This document shows positions 6,037 through 25,290 of a stretch of DNA of 26,785 bases, piece by piece. The DNA lies in NCBI GenBank assembly GCA_024626585.2, contig JANKJI020000002.1:36718017-36744801 (forward strand). The letters are read 5' to 3'. The notes beneath the pieces are model-generated. The model was given only the letters and a program-made list of their open reading frames with translations. It made no database searches and was not told where the DNA came from. The position numbers and the translations under genes were made by a program. Position 1 is the stretch's first letter. Each line of letters opens with the position of its first letter. Source of the stretch: Ginkgo biloba (taxonomy: Eukaryota > Plantae > Ginkgophyta).

Positions 6037-6598
6037 CCTCTAATCTCTTGGTGGTTTCAAATCCATTATGATTTTAACCTTGGCCATGTCTCCCATGATT
6101 CCATCTTTACAAACGATGTGGCCAAGTAGTACTCCAAATGGAGTAAAGAAAATGTTCTTTTTGATATTTAGGTACAATCTCACTTGTCAACACCTCTCGA
6201 GCATCATCCTTAATTGCTTGATGTGGTCTTTGAGAAGACCATAGACTGTCCACTCGTGAAAGTATGCTTCCAGGAATTTATGCATAAATTCTTGAAAGAC
6301 TTTGACTAGAATCCTTGAAAATACTTCTGGCGCATTCTTCGACCCAAACAGCATGATAGTATATGCGAAGGATTCCCATTCCGAGGTGAATGTTGTCTTG
6401 TGTCGATCTTCGACAATAATCTTAACTAGATTATACCTAGAAAATTTATCTATGAACAAAAATATATCACTCCTTGAGATGTTCTATAATATATCTTCCA
6501 TTTATGGTGTTAGGAATGGATCCATGATTATTGCCTTTTTAAGTTCTCTATAATCAACACAGACACACATTCTATTTTTTTGTTTCTTTGATACCAAT
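6037..6598 (-). mobile_element. Decayed Ty3/gypsy reverse transcriptase
   Basis: KKQKNRMCVCVDYREL...DKFSRYN...EDRHKTTFTSEW...MLFGSKNAPEVFSR...AYFHEW (YxDD eroded)...LERC*QVRLYLNIKK...LLGHIVCKDG. Confidence 0.9.
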
Positions 6599-7843
6599 TC
6601 TAACATGCATATTGTAAGCATACTTAAAATTAACTTCTAGAATGGAAAACCATTAATCTTGCTAAAATAAATAGGTTACAGTGGAATAAATTTAGTATTT
6701 ACAAAATTATTATAATAATATATGATATATGTTAAGTACCTAACTCTCTTTGGGATGAAACATTTAAAACGTTTAATCGATGACAAGTAATAAGTAACCA
6801 CCTATCTTCAAGATAGAACACATTAAACCTCAATCAAAGAGAATTGATGTGTGAGTGAATCATTTTTTTCTTGTTGTACTACCTATAATAATACCTCTAC
6901 TCATTATTATATTGGATGATACAAATGCACAAAATAATAAATAGGGATTTATTAAGAATCTAACCACATACACCAATCAAATAATAAAATGGGAGGCTTT
7001 CATATGTAGTATAATTATATTCTATTTCTATTTCGTATTAAAATTTCATATCATTAATAATAAATTTATTGTCAAAATATTAGAACCACAAATCCATCAT
7101 GACATTTTTGTTTTCACATTATTATATTATATCATACAAATTGAAGTAATTCAACATACTATAGCCATAGAAAAGGTTGAAATAATGCAGTATTTATTAA
7201 TACTAATATGAAAATATGAACTTAGTCTATTTTAAGATTATATCCCATGATAAACTTATGTATGAAATTAATTCCATATTAAATTATTTTTTTGGCCAAG
7301 TTAAAAATAGAAAACTAGGCAATTAATGCCTTTATGATCTTACTTCAGGACTTTCATTACCAGATGCATTGTCATTATGGGTTGGAAAAATAATTTGATT
7401 TATCTTTATTTAGATATTAATGTAATACTAAACTAGTGATTTATTTCCATTAATCCCCATTAAAGCCAATAATTTTATATCTGAGAAGAGATAAGAAAAA
7501 GTTCATCCCTCCCATATTATTATTCTTTTGTAGTATTTTATCACTTGTGTTTCATACACTCATTAAATTAGATATAGCACTTTAGGTGTAATTTCCATAA
7601 GGAGGAATGAAATAATACAATTATGTCTACTAACAATATGGTTATTTTATGTTTAGTTCCTTATATTGTGTAGGCACAATATTTCAATGAATATACCAAC
7701 TCTATTTTAGGAATTAAAACTTACTACATCACATGATTCAATGCATTAATATATGAATGCTTAGACATGATAGATCAAAAACCATTGTCATAAAGAATTT
7801 ATAACCACATACTTCTCATGATGCATGAAATCACTCAAATGTT
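6572..7843 (+). repeat. ~1.27-kb dispersed repeat, copy 1
   Basis: Collinear with 14490-15763 at near-constant offset (7918-7920); 51/60 identity in the one 60-nt block counted. Confidence 0.92.
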
Positions 7844-9005
7844 TATCTCATGAAACCCCACAATGTAGTTTTTTATTCAATGGGATTCACATATATAAGT
7901 TATAGCCAAAGAATGTTTATTATATAGACAAATAATAGATTTATTCTTGGTCATGTGATTCAAAGAAACATATTCAATGGAGAGAGAATAATCATATGAT
8001 ACATTATGATTTTAATAGGGTATTTATAATAAAAAATTATATAAACCATCTCTCCTCTCTTTGGTATTTGTCATATGAATAATCCTCAATATAGATATTC
8101 AAAAATGAAAATATATAGGATTTCAATTTCTTCATTATATAAATTCCATGATTACTTTTTATGGAAACCTTCATATGTCATGAACAATAATTATGTAATT
8201 TCTAAAGTAAGAAGATAGACCTATTGTCTTGAATCATGAAATTAAAAAACTAGAAAAGGTAACCACATTTAATAAAAATATGTTATTCATAATATATAAA
8301 TTAAGAAAATAGTTTCAGTATTTTTTGAGAATTGACTTTGAATTTGACTATAAACATCCACACAAAAGAAGAAAACATAATGTGTAAGTAGATATTTTTT
8401 TCAAAACAACCAAAAGAAATAATATTGTTTATGATTACTATGATAATCATCGTATGGATGAATGAAAATTAAATAGAATACATAAAGTATAAATATATTG
8501 TTTAAATATNNNNNNNNNNNNNNNNNNGTTCACTATACACTTTTAAATCTATTTAGAAAGTATCATTCTATAGTGCACAGAAAGGATCCACTTTAGACTA
8601 CAATCTAATTTTCAAAAATAGGTTTCATGATAAGGGTACATAATGCACCTATTATGATGTATAGTATTTTGAGTAAATATAATATATTTGATAATAAAAT
8701 AATTCAAATACATATCATATAATATGATATAAGTCAAACTAAAAAAATCCATACATNNNNNNNNNNNNNNNNNNNNNNNNNNNNNNNNNNNNNNNNNNNN
8801 NNNNNNNNNNNNNNNNNNNNNNNNNNNNNNNNNNNNNNNNNNNNNNNNNNNNNNNNAATTTTCATTTCACAATCACCAATCCTCCAACACTAAGTAGGTA
8901 CATCAATAAACAAACTAAAAATAATGGGACACAATCTTAAATGGAATTTTTATTAATATTAAGATAGTACATAAAATAAATATAACTTTTTTGAGAAGGT
9001 GTGGA

Positions 9006-9636
9006 TGTTAACTAGGCCTAAGATACTCCATAAATAGTATGGTAACTACTCTTGTCCAATAAAATATTCTCTTATATATTTTCATATACAAAAAAATAGT
9101 TTTTCCATTAGGTAAAGACACTTTTGATAGATGCCAATTAACTCCTAACTAATTCCTAGATTAACTCCAACTATCTCCTACATTCTCTCAAATTTATTCC
9201 TAAAATAACTCAAACAAACTCCTAAACTAACTCTAAATGTATCTTAAACTAACTTCAACTAATTTCTAAACTACCTCCAATTATCTCCTAAACTATTGCT
9301 GGGCATTTGTTAACCAAGGTCTTAGGACTGTAAGTGCAACAATGATAACAATCAAATTATTCCATTAATTTTTGTGAACAACATCTTGTTGAACATTCTT
9401 TGATAGTATTATACTTATTTGTTAATGCTCAGGGCTCATTTATTAGCCACATTTCTCATTCATTGAAACTCCATTACCCATTCATCAAAGTTGCATTGCC
9501 CATTTTTTGAACTCTATTACTCGTTCATCGAAGTCCTTAGGTTGTATGTCACCATTATTGTAGAGTCTTAGATGAATAATCATTTTTAGTAGCAACATCA
9601 TGACTATTGTATTTATTCATAGATGGAATCATAACA
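9006..9636 (-). mobile_element. Putative 3' LTR (631 bp, possibly copia-type)
   Basis: Minus strand starts TGTTAT (9636) and ends TTAACA (9006), giving a TGTTA/TAACA terminal inverted repeat. It is preceded by a PPT and contains a degenerate AACTCCTAAACT tandem block (~9140-9295) and a TATATAAG near 9072-9079. Confidence 0.7.
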
Positions 9637-9650
9637 TTTCCCCCTCATTT
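9637..9650 (-). promoter_or_regulatory. Polypurine tract
   Basis: AAATGAGGGGGAAA directly followed by TGTTAT. Confidence 0.75.
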
Positions 9651-9692
9651 AATTGATTTTTCCTAAAGAAATTAGAGTGACGGATGTTATAG

Positions 9693-10815
9693 TATTTCTA
9701 GGCTTTTCATGATTGTTGCAATAATGGAACGATTCAATTCAATAATGGGGATCATCCTTATGTTCATGTAAATAGTACTTATCCTTTAAAACATTCAATC
9801 TAGGGTATTTCAAGTTATTCCATCAAGGCCAAATTATAAACATAGGATGCAAAAGGTGCCATTCCATGATAACATCATCCCCCTATATGGATAGGATCTG
9901 GAATGAAATCATATCTAAGTGAATGCATTATTAATAATGATGCCACCCATGTTATATATATATAATCATAAACATAAAAATCTTTTGTAAGAGAAGTATA
10001 TACCACAGGTTTAACAACTCTAATAGTAGGATTGATGTTTCCTGTTAGTTTCTCAAGATTAAATGGAAAAGAAAGGCCTACAAAGTTAAATCCACCACAT
10101 GTGTAGTATACAATTTTATTTGGGATTTCTCCCAAAATTTCCACTTATATTATACATTCCTCACTAATAATTATGGTGCATAAGTTCATGATTAAGTATA
10201 ATACCCAAGGAATATTGGGTGTCGACATTAGTTAATGCCACCTCTACTACCTCTAAAACTATAATACTAAAACTACCTATACTATTAGGGTCTTTACTAA
10301 TAATGAATCACCCTATATTAATCAAGTCATATGGATTCAGATGGAATTTTTCTCCCCATGTTTCCATCATCATTTTATGATAAGGCTTATGATCATAAGA
10401 AGCACGAACTTGCCATACCTTAGACTGGAGATCAAACAAACTGCATACAAAGGCTAGTGCACTGCCCCATTGCCCAGCACCAGTTTCTGTTACAAGGCTT
10501 TTGACACCTTCATATTTATAGTAAATCCTTGAAGGAGTTCCAAGCATCTTCTATAATCTATTTTCCCTAAAAAAATATGTTGATCGCCAACATTTGTACA
10601 CCTCAAGCACCTCTTCTGGAATGTCAATGTATCTCCGTTGACTGGCTTCTTGCATGATCATTTCTTTTGGAAAGAGAGGGAAAAAATCTTTGAGTTTAAG
10701 CGGTTCACGAGTCTCTGGATTTAAGGCAGGTGGAGGTGGCTCAGGAAGGTCAGCAATCAAATTGTACCACTTACGAGGCATATCTTCATCATCCAGCATT
10801 ATCTTCAGCCTTGAG
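9693..10815 (-). pseudogene. trpB2: Type-2 tryptophan synthase beta chain (At5g38530/TrpB2-like), intronless, 3'-truncated; 3' half of chimera
   Basis: MPRKWYNLIADLPEPPPP...IDIPEEVLEVY...RIYYKYEG|VKSLVTETGAGQWGSALAF...DPNSIGS...GGFNFVGLSFPF...DFIPDPIHIGG*CYHGMAP...IP*IECFKG. Stops at 10551, 10308, 10145, 9875 and further 3'; frameshifts near 10172 and 9757. Confidence 0.95.
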
Positions 10816-12124
10816 TTGGGAGAGATACGCCCTACAATGCCAAAGTTAAGAAAGCCAATCCGTCCATCATGAAGCACCCACAAATTTCCTGCATGAACAT
10901 CTGCATGGAAGGTTTCACAGGATAGTAAACTCCCAAACCTGCAACAAGTTTGGCCTGTAGGTTAGTTCTTAAGTTCTCCAAAATATTTAAATTAGACAGC
11001 CCAGATGAATCATGTCCCTAATTAATAACTAACTCTAAATGAATTAGCAAATGCTTAGAAGTAAGTTCCTTTTTTTCCGAGCCTATTTCTCTAAGAATTC
11101 ATCCATACCAGACCAAAGACTAGAAGACTATATTCTAATTCTCCATTTCTAGGAATTCTTCTTCTCTGATGCCACAATAAATACTGCACCTAAATTCCCA
11201 AAAGAAATATGACGACTATATTCTAATTCAAGTGTCACAAGGTGTAAGCAGCATACCATACATTAAGTGCAGTTATCAAACTCGCCTCTGGACTACGAAC
11301 TAGTGATCGTATCGAATCCAAATCTGTAAGAGGAACACCATATAATCGCTCCATTGTTAATACTCTTTGATTGTTGCAGTGATAATAAACTTTTGGGGTT
11401 GTTGCTTGTCTTGTGAGCCCCATAGTTTCTAGGTATTTTCTGAAAGAGTCAATATTTGTAGCTTCCTTTTAAAATTCGACTTCTTCCCGCATTGATTGCT
11501 TTACGTCTCCAACAATACCTACGAGTGACGTATGACTGATTTGAGGATTTAGAAACTCCACTATCCTTGCAACCTCATACAAGAAATTCAGGTCTGCAAT
11601 AAAAAAATCCTCAATTCCTGGCTTTAGAACCTTGAACACCACTTCTTTTTGGGACCCTTTTAGCCTGGCACCATGTACCTCTGCAATTGAAGCTGAAGCA
11701 ATTGGTACTGGATCAATATACTCATATACATTTTCCAATGGTTGCATGAGTTCATCCCATATTATGGCTTCGATTTCTTGAAAAGGCACTGCAGGGGCCT
11801 TGTCAAAATCGTTTTGGAATTTTGTGACATAATCTGTTGGGAACAAATTTGAGGTTGAGGCTAGAAATTGGCCCATTTTGATATCGGTTGCACCCATACG
11901 TTCAAGCACTTGTCGTAAATAGACAGGATTGAGCAATCCAAGCTGTAGTGCACTGAAGGCATCCCTAGAAGTATTTGCAGTTATTGATACTTCTAACAAC
12001 CATTCGTTACCAATGGCCATAACTACTTGAATTCCTTGTGCTAATCGTATAGCTCCTCGTGGCCCAGTGTTGATAGAAGTTTGAAAAAGATCTCCAACCA
12101 ACTCAGGGAGTTTGTCCATCCTAT
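10816..12124 (-). pseudogene. ABC1K9: ABC1/AarF atypical kinase, ABC1K9 (At5g05200)-like; exons 12124-11257 and 10938-10816; 5' half of chimera
   Basis: QTSINTGPRG...ERMGATDIKMGQF...PIASASIAEVHGA...VVFKVLKPG...EEVEF*KEATNI...VLTMERLYGVPLTDLDSIRSLV...ITALNVW|FGSLLSCETFHADVHAGNLW...GFLNFGIVGRISP. One in-frame TAA at 11469-11471; lacks transit peptide and C-terminus. Confidence 0.93.
10939..11256 (-). other. 318-bp spliceosomal intron (phase 2)
   Basis: TG|GTATGC donor at 11256, CTAAC branch candidate at 10961-10965, TTGCAG|G acceptor at 10939. Removal restores ...ALNVW FGSLL... exactly. Confidence 0.9.
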
Positions 12125-12229
12125 CTGCAATAATGTCCACATGCTTAAAAAATCAATTAGGTTAGACCAACCATGTTCCAAAGTAAAACAACTTCATTCA
12201 CCTTAATGGAATTTAAATGTAGTACATAC
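12125..12229 (-). other. Putative 105-bp intron upstream of the ABC1K exon
   Basis: G|GTATGT donor-like site at 12229, CTAAC/CTAAT branch candidates at 12156-12165, TTGCAG acceptor at 12125 exactly where kinase homology begins. Confidence 0.55.
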
Positions 12230-12678: not shown

Positions 12679-14246
12679 TTTGAATATGCGACCAAATCCA
12701 CAAGGGACCAACAAAGTAAATGAACCAACAAAAAATTTGGAAATCTATGGGAGTATTGTTGATTGAAACAAGGTTAGGAAAATCTTATATATCCGTCCTT
12801 TTTCACTCCGTAAAACCTCCCATGCTCTAGTATAGAACATGCATAATTTGCGGTTAATGACTAATCCAAAAGCATAGAGATTGATTTTAACCCTAAGAAA
12901 ATCATCCAATATAAATNNNNNNNNNNNNNNNNNNNNNNNNNNNNNNNNNNNNNNNNNNNNNNNNNNNNNNNNNNNNNNNNNNNNNNNNNNNNNNNNNNNN
13001 NNNNNNNNNNNNNNNNACACTTGGAAGATATGCAGTTTAGGTTTATTATTATATAAGGAGGTTTTAGAGAGCTTAGGGATCATCTTGAGCTATTGTAATA
13101 ATATTATCAAGTACATTGTGGTGTTTCTCTTTTAGTCTCCTTCTATAATTAGTTACTTTTCTATTAATAAAGCTTGGTTTGATCATATTTTGGCATATTT
13201 TGTGCATTTCCTTCTTTGCAAATAGGATTCAGTTTGTTCCACCCACCTTCACCTAACATTTTCATACCAATCACATTATTATTCACAACTATTATAACAC
13301 TTGTGTTTCTTCTACCAAATGGATTTGGAAATGAGTAAGTGTGTAATTTTTTATTTGTTAATGATTCCAAGTGTATCCCTTGAATCTTTTCAATTCCATA
13401 TCCTATCCTACATGCATATGGTGAGATTAGTACTAATTTATTGCCAACCACTTAAGTGCTATGTCTAAATTCCTAAATATTTTATGTGCTTGTCTTTATA
13501 GAATTTGTTTAGCTTGTAAATTCATCAAGGACATAATTAATCTATTTAAAATCCAATATCATGCCATAATCATTTTTATCTAATTCACTGAGTTGGTGAT
13601 CAATACACTATTCCATAACAATTTTCTTAACATAAGGCTTAAGTTCCTCTAGAGACATCAATTGATAAATAATAAATGTTGCTTAATCATCATACTCTTC
13701 TTTAGTAAATTTCAATTAGTGAGCTAAAAAATCACCTGCTTTACTATTCTTATATTTTTCTTCTCCATTCTATGTCCTCATATAATCATATACTTTTCTT
13801 TTCTCATTTCACTAACCTTTAAGTACCTCCCTTCGCCTATCTTGAAGTCTTTTATGACCTTATTTATCAATACTACTCTTGTGTCTTTATCCCCTTCTTT
13901 CATTTGCCACATGCAATGAGAATATGTCTTATACCATTTCACCCATGGATACTCTTATCTCTTCCAAGAGGTTATTTATATATTCCTCTATTAATAAAGA
14001 AATTTTAATTCTTAAATTATCATCCATATGAGTGTTGGAGAATGATTCCATTATTAGTGTTCACCCACAAGGCCAAGAGTGTGGCTATCATACCATTGTT
14101 ATTTTCCAAACTAGTTACAACTAATACAACTGAAGGAAAATAAACTNNNNNNNNNNNNNNNNNNNNNNNNNNNNNNNNNNNNNNNNNNNNNNNNNNNNNN
14201 NNNNNNNNNNNNNNNNNNNNNNNNNNNNNNNNNNNNNNNNNNNNNN

Positions 14247-14325
14247 AGGAAGTCATTTACATATTAAGTGTAGATACAAAAGGTAAGTCACTTTCATATT
14301 AGGTATAGGTGAAGTCACTTACAAT
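14247..14325. repeat. AAGTCACTT-motif short tandem repeat
   Basis: AAGTCATTT/AAGTCACTT three times; same motif as 25115-25290. Confidence 0.55.
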
Positions 14326-14489
14326 CAAAGTTTTCATCTAGATCAAATATCTACCACATTTAAATGTAAACACACTAGGATAGACCCTAGATATGTTAGT
14401 CTTATTTTAATATTTAGGCTATTTTATTCAATTGATATCCCCGACAGTTAACAATTGTCAACATATGATTAGTGTATAATAAATTAATT

Positions 14490-15763
14490 ATATTCTTTTG
14501 TCTCTTTGATACCAATTCAAACATGCCTATTATAAGTGTACTTAGAACAAACTTCTAGAATGGAAAACCATTAACCTTGCTAGCATCAACAGGTTATGGT
14601 GGAATCAATTTAGTCTTCTCAAACATCTTGTAGGAATAAAGGATATATATTAAGTACATAAATCTCTTTAGGATGCAACATTTAAAATTTTTTATAGAGG
14701 AAAATTAATAAGTATCCACCTATCTTTAAGATATAACACATTAAACCTCAATCAATGAGAATTGATGTGCAAATGACTCGTATTTTTATTATTGTACTAC
14801 CTCTAATAAGGCCTCTAATAATTATTATAGAGGATGATACAAATGAACAAAAGAATAAATAGGGATTTATTAAGAATATACTCGCATACACCAATCAAAT
14901 AATAAAATGGGAGGTCTACATATGTAGTGTAATTATAGGGTATTTCTATTTGGTACAAAAGGTTCATGTCATTAATAACAAACTTATTGTTAAAATATTA
15001 CAACCACAAAGCCTTAATGAAATTTTTTATTTTGAAATTATTAGATTATATTATACAGATTGAAGTAATTAAAAATACTATAGCTATAGAAAATGTTAAA
15101 ATAGTGTATTATTTATTAATACTAATATGAAAATCTAAATTTTAGTCTATTTTAATATTATATCCATTAAGAAAATTATGTATGAAATTAATTCCATATT
15201 AAATTATTTTTATGGCCAAGTTAAAGATAAAAAATTAGGGAATGAATTCCTTTATGCTCTTACTTTAGGGATTCCATTACCATATGCATTATCATTATGG
15301 GTTGGAATGATACCTCCATTCATCTTTTTTATATCTTAATGTAATACTAAAAATAGTTCTTTATTTCCATTAATCTTGTTTAAATCCAATAATGTTATTT
15401 TTGAAAAGAGAGAAACAAAATTTCATCGCTCTCATATTATTATGATTTTATATTCTTTGATCACTTGTGTTTTGTACACTCATTAATTTAGGTGTAGCAC
15501 TTTAGGTGTAATCTCCATAAGGAGGAATGAAAGAAGACAAGTATTTCTACCAATAATATGGTTATTTTAGGTTTAGTTTGTTATATTGTGTAGACACAAT
15601 ATTTCAATCAATATTCCAACTCCATTTTACAACTTAAAACTTACTACATCACATGATTCAATGTATTAATATATGAAGATTTATACGTTGTAGATCAACA
15701 ACCATTGTTATCAAGGATTGACAACCACACATTTCTCATGATGCATGAAAGAACTCAAATGTT
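14490..15763 (+). repeat. ~1.27-kb dispersed repeat, copy 2
   Basis: Direct repeat of 6572-7843; similarity stops where a TGTTGA-starting element begins at 15760. Confidence 0.92.
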
Positions 15764-16084
15764 GACTGAAATTCCATCCTAACCATGAGGGGGATAGAAA
15801 ATGGTTTTATAAAGGTCTAAGATTGTAAGGAGGTTATGACCATAAGGAATCCATTGAAGAGATTTTACTATATTGGGTCTTTCTCATCCTAGCTCATATA
15901 TATATTATTACTTAATTAATATTGAGTTAATAAAGTATCTTATCTAATTATCTTTAGGCTAATTCGAGTTAGTGAATGTGCAAAGGAATATTATTATTAT
16001 TAATATGGAATTTAAAAGACATTGGCTAAAACATGTGACTTTATTAGAGGTTGAAGGGAATAATGCATGGAATATCTCCCAAGG
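15760..16084 (+). mobile_element. LTR-like family X, copy A (5' part, cut by gap)
   Basis: Starts TGTTGA; aligns in reverse complement to 18156-18483 (shared GTTAGTGAATGTGCAAAGG, TTATTAGAGGTTGAAGGGAATA, GCATGGAATATCTCCCAAGG). Confidence 0.75.
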
Positions 16085-17260: not shown

Positions 17261-17762
17261 ATTTATACTTGTCCTATAAACCTATCAAATCATGTACAAG
17301 ATATCCTACTTAATATTCTATGCACTTATGGAGATTTAAAATCTAAGCTCTATAACCATTAAACTAGATTCTAAGATAAATTTAAGACAATAAACCATTC
17401 ACAAATATTTTGTACAAATAACCAAACTCTCTTAGTTCCACTTGTAAATTATAATTCAATAATACAATATGTTTTCAATAAGTGTGTGTGAGGAGGAACC
17501 CAATGTCCTTTTATGAGAGGATCCTTCATTACATTTAGTAGATTCCCTTGGGATATATTATATTTAATATTCCCTTCAACCTCTAATAACCTCACATGTT
17601 TTATTCAATGTCTATTAAAGGTCATATCAATAATAGTAATATGCCTTCGCACATTCACTAACTAGAATTAGCCTAAAGTTAATTAATAAAGTAATAAGAG
17701 AGATATGTGAGTTAGGAAGAGAAATACCTAATCTAGTAAGAACTCCTTCAATGGTTTTTCTT
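17261..17762 (-). mobile_element. LTR-like family X, copy C
   Basis: Direct repeat of 17863-18400 (e.g. AAACTAGATTCTAAGATAAAT, TATTCCCTTCAACCTCTAATAACCTCA). Confidence 0.8.
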
Positions 17763-17862
17763 NNNNNNNNNNNNNNNNNNNNNNNNNNNNNNNNNNNNNN
17801 NNNNNNNNNNNNNNNNNNNNNNNNNNNNNNNNNNNNNNNNNNNNNNNNNNNNNNNNNNNNNN

Positions 17863-18483
17863 ATCTGTACTTTTTATATGAACCTATCAAATCACCTACA
17901 ATATATCCTACTTGATATTCTATGCTCTTATGGATATTTTTAATCTAAGATCTATCACCATCAAACTAGATTCTAAGATAAATTAAAGACAATAAACCAT
18001 TCATAAATATTTTGGACAAATAACCACACTCTCTTAATTCCACTTATAATTCAAGAATGTAAGAATTTGCTAAGAAGTGTGTATGAGGATGAACACAAGT
18101 TCCTTTCATGAGAGGAATCCTTGGTTACATTTAGTATATTTNNNNNNNNNNNNNNTTCCTTGGGAGATATTCCATGCAATATTCCCTTCAACCTCTAATA
18201 ACCTCATATGCTTTAGTCAATTTCTATTAAAGGGCATATCAATAATAGTAATATGCCTTTGCACATTCACTAACTAGAATTAGTTTAAAGTTAATTAATA
18301 AAGATAATTTATTAACTCATTACTTAATAAATTAATAAGAAATATGTATGAGCTAGGAAGAGAAAGACCTAATATGGTAAGAAATCTTCAATGGTTTCAC
18401 TTTGGTCATATCCCCTTAATAAGATAGAATCTCATAGAACCATGTCCTAGCACCCTCCTAGTTAGGATGGAACATCACTAATC
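17863..18483 (-). mobile_element. LTR-like family X, copy B
   Basis: Homologous to copy C (direct) and copy A (inverted). Confidence 0.8.
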
Positions 18484-24872: not shown

Positions 24873-25114
24873 CTAATTCAATTCATGGTTCTAGTTACCA
24901 AATATAACTACATAAGAGGAATTTTTAAGGGATAAATTGAGTGTCTAAGAAACTTGATTGAGATCTCAAGAGGATTATGTAGAAAAATTAGAGAGTATGA
25001 TCAATGCATTAATCAATGGTAATAAAGTTTGTGATGACAATAATAATACCAACCATGAGACAATTGACAACATAAGAAGTGGTATATTTGAATGAGTTTA
25101 TGAATCCATTTGCA

Positions 25115-25290
25115 TATAAGTTACACGTAAGTCATTTGCATATAGAATACAAGTAAGTCACTTGTATTCAAGTTACAAGTCACTTTCATGCAAGTTGCAA
25201 GAAAGTCACTTGCACACAAGTTGAAGGTGATTTCTTATTAATTGTCGAAAAGCTACCTGCACTTAAGATGAAAGTGACTTTCTGTCACTT
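25115..25290. repeat. AAGTCACTT-motif degenerate tandem repeat
   Basis: About 5 units of (A/C)AAGTCACTT(G/T) at ~20-26 bp spacing, plus an inverted AAGTGACTT. Confidence 0.65.

Follow-up and report, generated by a model that had tools for sequence, protein, structure and literature searches.

The 26,785-nt stretch of Ginkgo biloba DNA analysed here, which we call the window, carries on its minus strand a chimera in which ABC1K9-type kinase sequence runs in frame into sequence of a type-2 tryptophan synthase beta subunit (TrpB2). Introns are missing from both halves, a polypurine tract (PPT) and a long terminal repeat (LTR) adjoin the TrpB2 end, other Ginkgo copies have the same joints, and the window copy has decayed neutrally. 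We consider it very probable that the chimera is a retrocopy made by an LTR element in the manner of maize Bs1, an element, probably of gypsy type, having captured host RNA and then spread, after which its copies decayed.

The kinase-TrpB2 junction and its reading frame

Both halves belong to the families originally named for them, the kinase through Pfam ABC1 matches and orthologs of the At5g05200 type, which we take to be ABC1K9, and the TrpB2 part through best scores with the type-2 NCBIfam models PRK12391 and TIGR01415. The Ginkgo parents were represented by conifer, Nymphaea and Arabidopsis orthologs and by the loose ends of RNA reads. The initial annotation had the kinase reading pass without interruption into TrpB2, and this is what the minus strand encodes: G-I-V-G-R-I-S-P leads into the TrpB2 N-terminus at 10817-10820 (Table 1). 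On the kinase side the parent continues P-T-T-W, with eight RNA loose ends at 10817, and on the other side T-T-P-N-S-R is found in the model Gb_27241, taken as the TrpB2 parent's 5' exons. Parental identity at the junction, around the common Pro codon, may be anything from 1 to 6 nt, the TrpB2 parent being represented by Gb_27241. The junction falls about 22 nt into kinase exon 9, which is a mid-exon position and not a splice site.

Several assemblies bear on whether the junction is genuine. It lies inside a gap-free contig stretch (8857-12916), and a run X1 contig covering 10730-12097 spans it with 0 differences, which answers the concern over misassembly raised at the outset; X1 is not fully independent, because it may come from the same tree. 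Run X10, from another study, yielded exact contigs over intron 7, the 5' edge and the LTR start, and a diverged paralog contig that crosses the junction by 25 nt, below the 31-nt bridging threshold. Beside the gap at 8757-8856 the X1 contig diverges from the window (8860-8973), and it carries on for 39 letters within the gap at 12917; where the assembly borders on gaps it may therefore not be trustworthy. The recurrence of the junction in six other Ginkgo models, described below, is the stronger evidence that it is genuine. No listed match from other species carried both kinase and TrpB2. An 18-nt junction pattern gave 16 matches in metagenomes, which were set aside as having no wider similarity to the window.

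The open frame first described, from ATG 12119 to TGA 10308, does comprise 497 codons plus the TGA when spliced, with two internal stops at 11471-11469 and 10553-10551, but its ends are not those of a gene. TGA 10308 is a third premature stop, TrpB2 similarity to conifer mRNA extending on to 9694, and ATG 12119 is internal, lying about 60 residues into the kinase, and is not the parent's start. Past 10308 the aligned TrpB2 frame meets seven more stops, one of them due to a local frameshift at 9874-9877, with further frameshifts at about 10171 and at 9758; in all, the window copy has about ten stops and several frameshifts. The joined spliced model served for local comparison and counting only, and database searches were made with the separate pieces.

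Within the TrpB2 part, a 69-nt (23-codon) deletion with a 6-nt Glu-Gly overlap takes out the PLP-binding lysine of the SHK motif. The deletion is common to all seven copies, none of which therefore has the SHK lysine of an active type-2 TrpB. The kinase fragment lacks about 60 N-terminal and 150 C-terminal residues. Neither half could have worked from the start, because the kinase is truncated at both ends and TrpB2 is without its catalytic lysine.

Table 1. Features of the chimera and of the element sequence around it (window coordinates)
Feature	Position	Strand	Remarks
3' LTR, 631 bp	9006..9636	(-)	TGTTA...TAACA; 22-bp tandem array; 3' half high copy
Polypurine tract (PPT)	9637..9650	(-)	Paralog models read through the same tract
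Element tail	9651..9693	(-)	In frame with TrpB2; paralogs have E-G-x-E/K-I-L-Q-H-P
Nearly full-length TrpB2 coding sequence	9694..10816	(-)	Without 4 introns, transit peptide and last ~55 codons; stops 10553, 10310 and further ones; frameshifts
69-nt in-frame deletion site	10506..10511	(-)	Between two Glu-Gly codon pairs; RNA loose end at 10511; missed in the initial annotation
Kinase/TrpB2 switch point	10817..10820	(-)	Pro codon found in both parents; kinase R-I-S-P-T-T-W, TrpB2 R-T-T-P-N-S-R
Kinase exon 8 and about 22 nt of exon 9	10817..10938	(-)	Intron 8 gone; DFG reads NFG
Retained kinase intron 7, 318 bp	10939..11256	(-)	Phase 2, within a Trp codon; same position in Nymphaea
ABC1K9-type kinase exons 3-7, spliced	11257..12124	(-)	Introns 3-6 gone; private stop 11471-11469
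Low-copy intron-like segment	12125..12916	(-)	Branch-point-like motif and CAG acceptor at its end; probably 3' part of kinase intron 2
tRNA-iMet PBS-like motif (14095) and decayed gag-like frame	13017..14097	(-)	An N gap lies between it and the cargo; possibly part of the same element

Intron loss and the surrounding element

Taking intron positions from angiosperm orthologs (Nymphaea for the kinase and Arabidopsis for TrpB2), we found nine of ten internal parental positions empty, namely kinase introns 3-6 and 8 (five) and each of the four TrpB2 introns that the covered part would contain. The exception is kinase intron 7, the 318-bp intron that had been recognized from the letters alone, and which runs from 11256 to 10939 with GT..AG borders. 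It is skipped by 13 RNA reads and by two X10 DNA contigs of other copies, and another study's DNA contig contains it with 0 differences. Intron state thus varies by copy: wherever contigs of X10 and X15 cover intron 7, they match the window copy exactly.

At the opposite end of the cargo, the acceptor at 12125 falls where the Nymphaea ortholog has its conserved phase-1 intron 2, parent mRNA reads exit the window at 12126 into exon 2 (as loose ends), and depth from other copies falls off at 12124. An independent DNA contig matches 12060-12807 with 0 differences. Because kinase similarity begins at the intron 2 acceptor and parent reads exit there, the ~790 bp upstream of 12124 is probably an intron 2 remnant, a reading drawn from this boundary. 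With its intron 7 and this remnant, the window copy is either an early form, other copies having lost introns in later cycles, or one that later recombined with parent pre-mRNA.

The PPT-LTR begins 43 bp beyond the cargo, and its start is common to the paralogs. The short tail between TrpB2 and the PPT resembles, as we see it, the end of a gypsy chromodomain, and a G-L-P-P/L-D motif directly before the kinase in two models looks like a piece of gypsy pol; profile and database searches gave no confirming match for a gypsy identity of either. No 5' LTR partner or target-site duplication was found within the window, where N gaps at 12917-13016 and 14147-14246 interrupt the context. The gag-like remnant has 46% identity to the N-terminus of Gb_30919, and the sequence before the PBS-like motif at 14095 differs from the 3' LTR.

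The locus is flanked by two 1.27-kb direct repeats, 84% alike (6569-7843 and 14487-15763), whose minus-strand ends are tRNA-iMet PBS-like. We rejected them as unproven LTRs of this element, both ending PBS-like and neither matching the LTR behind the PPT. The lower copy adjoins a gypsy reverse transcriptase fragment, and the pair may be two LTR-PBS ends of another family. A decayed reverse transcriptase fragment lies at 6190-6459 on the minus strand (RVT_1, E 0.0011). Elsewhere in the window are an ~500-bp duplication across an N gap (17266-18472, 78–91%) with an inverted copy at 15772-16084 (75–82%), and related 26-bp tandem repeat units at 14248-14310 and 25107-25280, probably from the LTR of one family.

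A decayed copy family and the poly(A) reads

The search for paralogous chimeras proposed with the first description was productive, the closest proteins being Ginkgo gene models. Six other Ginkgo models (Gb_40135, Gb_06259, Gb_09404, Gb_30919, Gb_00832 and Gb_36200) have the same junction and the same 23-codon deletion, from which it follows that one founder chimera was amplified as a family. The stops at 11469 and 10551, and likewise that at 10308, are private to the window copy. Up to 9–11 variant contigs per site were present in X10. The founder joints seen are all in frame (the junction, the 69-nt deletion and the 3' joint to the element tail), as is a fourth in two models, where a pol-like G-L-P-P-D-R motif is joined to kinase D-R. 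DFG has become NFG in four copies, and the six models look patched with invented introns. Five paralog models (P0032, P0033, P0034, P0035 and P0303) have in common an upstream N-terminal peptide that is missing from the window and could represent either element sequence or a third captured gene; nothing reliable was found for it in Pfam, Atlas or viral contigs. Two models contain runs identical to the window copy while differing elsewhere (141 aa in Gb_30919, window 11685-12107, and 52 aa in Gb_36200, about 10593-10748), which suggests gap-filling mosaics in a draft assembly or recent gene conversion.

Protein identity from copy to copy is 59–81%, as against 82% between conifer and water lily kinases, and DNA differs by 11–16% among copies and by 5–7% for contigs taken as parent mRNA. 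At a substitution rate of 2.2e-9 per site per year (PMC5118899), a crude clock would place the founder's spread roughly 25–35 million years ago, a little before the LTR burst reported for 16–24 million years ago; the true age could be lower if hypermutation contributed.

The dN/dS comparison that had been suggested points to neutrality. Coding differences from the parent and paralog reads were counted at the 34 displayed, best-supported sites out of 587, picked by depth and not by codon position, and comprise 27 nonsynonymous and 7 synonymous changes. This ratio fits the neutral expectation of 73–78% nonsynonymous (p 0.45–1.0), and an omega of 0.15, as under purifying selection, is rejected (p=2.5e-9). 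Relative to the poly(A) reads there are 102 GC-to-AT and 26 AT-to-GC changes, an excess such as methylated, silenced repeats would acquire. Among residues common to conifer and water lily, 43 are changed in the window copy, the reverse count for the conifer being 13. Branch-wise dS from a three-way comparison was set aside, Nymphaea being saturated (dS above 2). The window copy is a neutral, decayed pseudogene without enzyme function, and all copies seen have decayed.

Raw poly(A) reads came from one library, run X24, of which 6% was sampled. These reads represent parent transcripts: they splice out intron 7, break at 10817, 10511 and 12126, and, in all but one read, carry non-window alleles at the displayed sites. 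No chimeric junction read was found in the X24 sample, which has no coverage at all over 10628-10763, immediately beyond the junction. Run X15, which contains RNA, yielded spliced parent-like mRNA along with low-depth contigs, one from a paralog, reaching 25 nt across the junction, and another identical to the window copy's intron; DNA carry-over is possible. The initial annotation supposed that the chimera may once have been translated and could now act as RNA on the parents. Translation is possible for the founder element only, neither half being enzymatically active and the window copy decaying neutrally, and an action on the parents finds no support in the poly(A) reads.

Origin of the chimera and related systems

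In the origin that we favour, a non-autonomous LTR retrotransposon, probably of Ty3/gypsy type, would have taken up host RNA during reverse transcription. The reverse transcriptase would have departed from the element just upstream of the PPT onto a spliced TrpB2 mRNA, left out 69 nt flanked by two Glu-Gly repeats, and switched at the common Pro codon to a partly spliced kinase transcript. The two captures may belong to successive cycles, and retrotransposition would then have carried the founder to at least seven loci. The gypsy identity, the order of these events, their age and the joining of the parts by template switching are what we infer; switching had been proposed from the start, and it and an RNA origin are supported by the intron loss, the mid-exon joint at the common Pro codon, the PPT-LTR next to the cargo and the identical joints throughout a multicopy family. 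Capture of DNA is argued against by the nine missing introns and by the size of the conifer ortholog genes, 242 kb and 117 kb. More than one parent gene is represented by an incomplete copy largely stripped of introns, as is expected of chimeric LTR retrocopies.

It is quite improbable that two retrocopies were instead joined as DNA, by microhomology-mediated deletion inside an element, or that a chimeric RNA first arose by read-through or ligation and was then amplified. The short homologies at the joints suit DNA end-joining equally, and the 5' edge at the intron 2 acceptor suits read-through from an element inserted in kinase intron 2; however, no unjoined relic appeared among the matches and the joint does not fall at a splice site. 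Either route would lead to an identical end product, amplified in the same way.

A working chimeric gene or selected RNA, like maize Bs1, in the founder or an unseen surviving copy is very improbable. Selection for one open frame, whether for protein function or escape from nonsense-mediated decay, would explain why the founder joints, including the pol-like joint of two models, are all in frame; the private nature of the window copy's three listed stops and the X15 contigs of the paralog junction and the window copy's intron also favour it. Against this, every copy has lost the catalytic lysine, the kinase is without its N-terminus and C-terminal part and reads NFG in four copies, the six models look patched and the copies are less alike than the kinases of conifer and water lily, and X15 may contain DNA. 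In-frame joints need no selection, because codon-aligned microhomology yields them, yet four of them leave room for selection on the founder RNA. Misassembly, capture by a DNA transposon (Pack-MULE or Helitron) or a LINE-made processed pseudogene is barely credible. The draft assembly does have many gaps, the two identical runs suggest some mosaic assembly, and one intron is retained. On the other side, the junction lies in a gap-free contig, is spanned by X1 and recurs at six loci that have diverged from one another; nine introns have gone; the cargo is not bracketed by terminal inverted repeats; and it has no poly(A) tail, ends inside TrpB2 coding sequence and runs into the PPT-LTR.

One further reading, which we hold to be unlikely, is that the founder's frame stayed open from its own pol through both captured parts to its tail because in-frame cargo helped the RNA to survive and spread, that the family preserves a stepwise loss of introns from cycle to cycle, and that transcription of some copy, or small RNAs from it against both parents, may persist; if true, the family would be a test case for reading-frame selection in non-autonomous plant elements. 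The chimera does not amount to evidence of a new enzyme fusion. The family does provide a clear case, in a gymnosperm, of exon shuffling by an LTR element in the way of Bs1, and its copies are numerous enough for the order of capture, deletion, loss of introns and spread to be reconstructed. In protein databases the numbers of ABC1K and TrpB2 members are inflated by at least six Ginkgo gene models that appear to be decayed copies of the element.

LTR elements that carry chimeras of two genes have been described before as a class (Bs1; Tan et al. 2016, PMC5131818). Gene capture is very frequent in gymnosperms: a recent survey reports about 400,000 captured fragments per gymnosperm genome, with two or more fragments in 13.68% of host TEs, and in the parts of that survey available to us in-frame two-gene fusions, common joints, the word 'chimeric' and the ginkgo family do not appear (Bao et al. 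2026, PMC13477047). The plant precedent for a chimeric gene-carrying retroelement is maize Bs1 (Elrouby and Bureau 2001, 2010), which contains three genes and is reported to be transcribed and translated (PMC13317346, PMC5131818). In contrast, the ginkgo family contains two identified genes and is older, and its window copy keeps one intron, decays neutrally and has no detected poly(A) transcript. Tan et al. 2016 describe LTR-mediated retrocopies with partial mRNAs, multiple parents, microsimilarity and switch points common to copies, and in Drosophila the young LTR retrocopies are in frame in 82% of cases (PMC5131818). The ginkgo copy differs from these in its partly spliced template, which is unusual, and in being known with a PPT and 3' LTR alone, but shares with them partial mRNAs from multiple parents, repeated retroposition and a frequent in-frame arrangement, and may share short similarity at the switch points.
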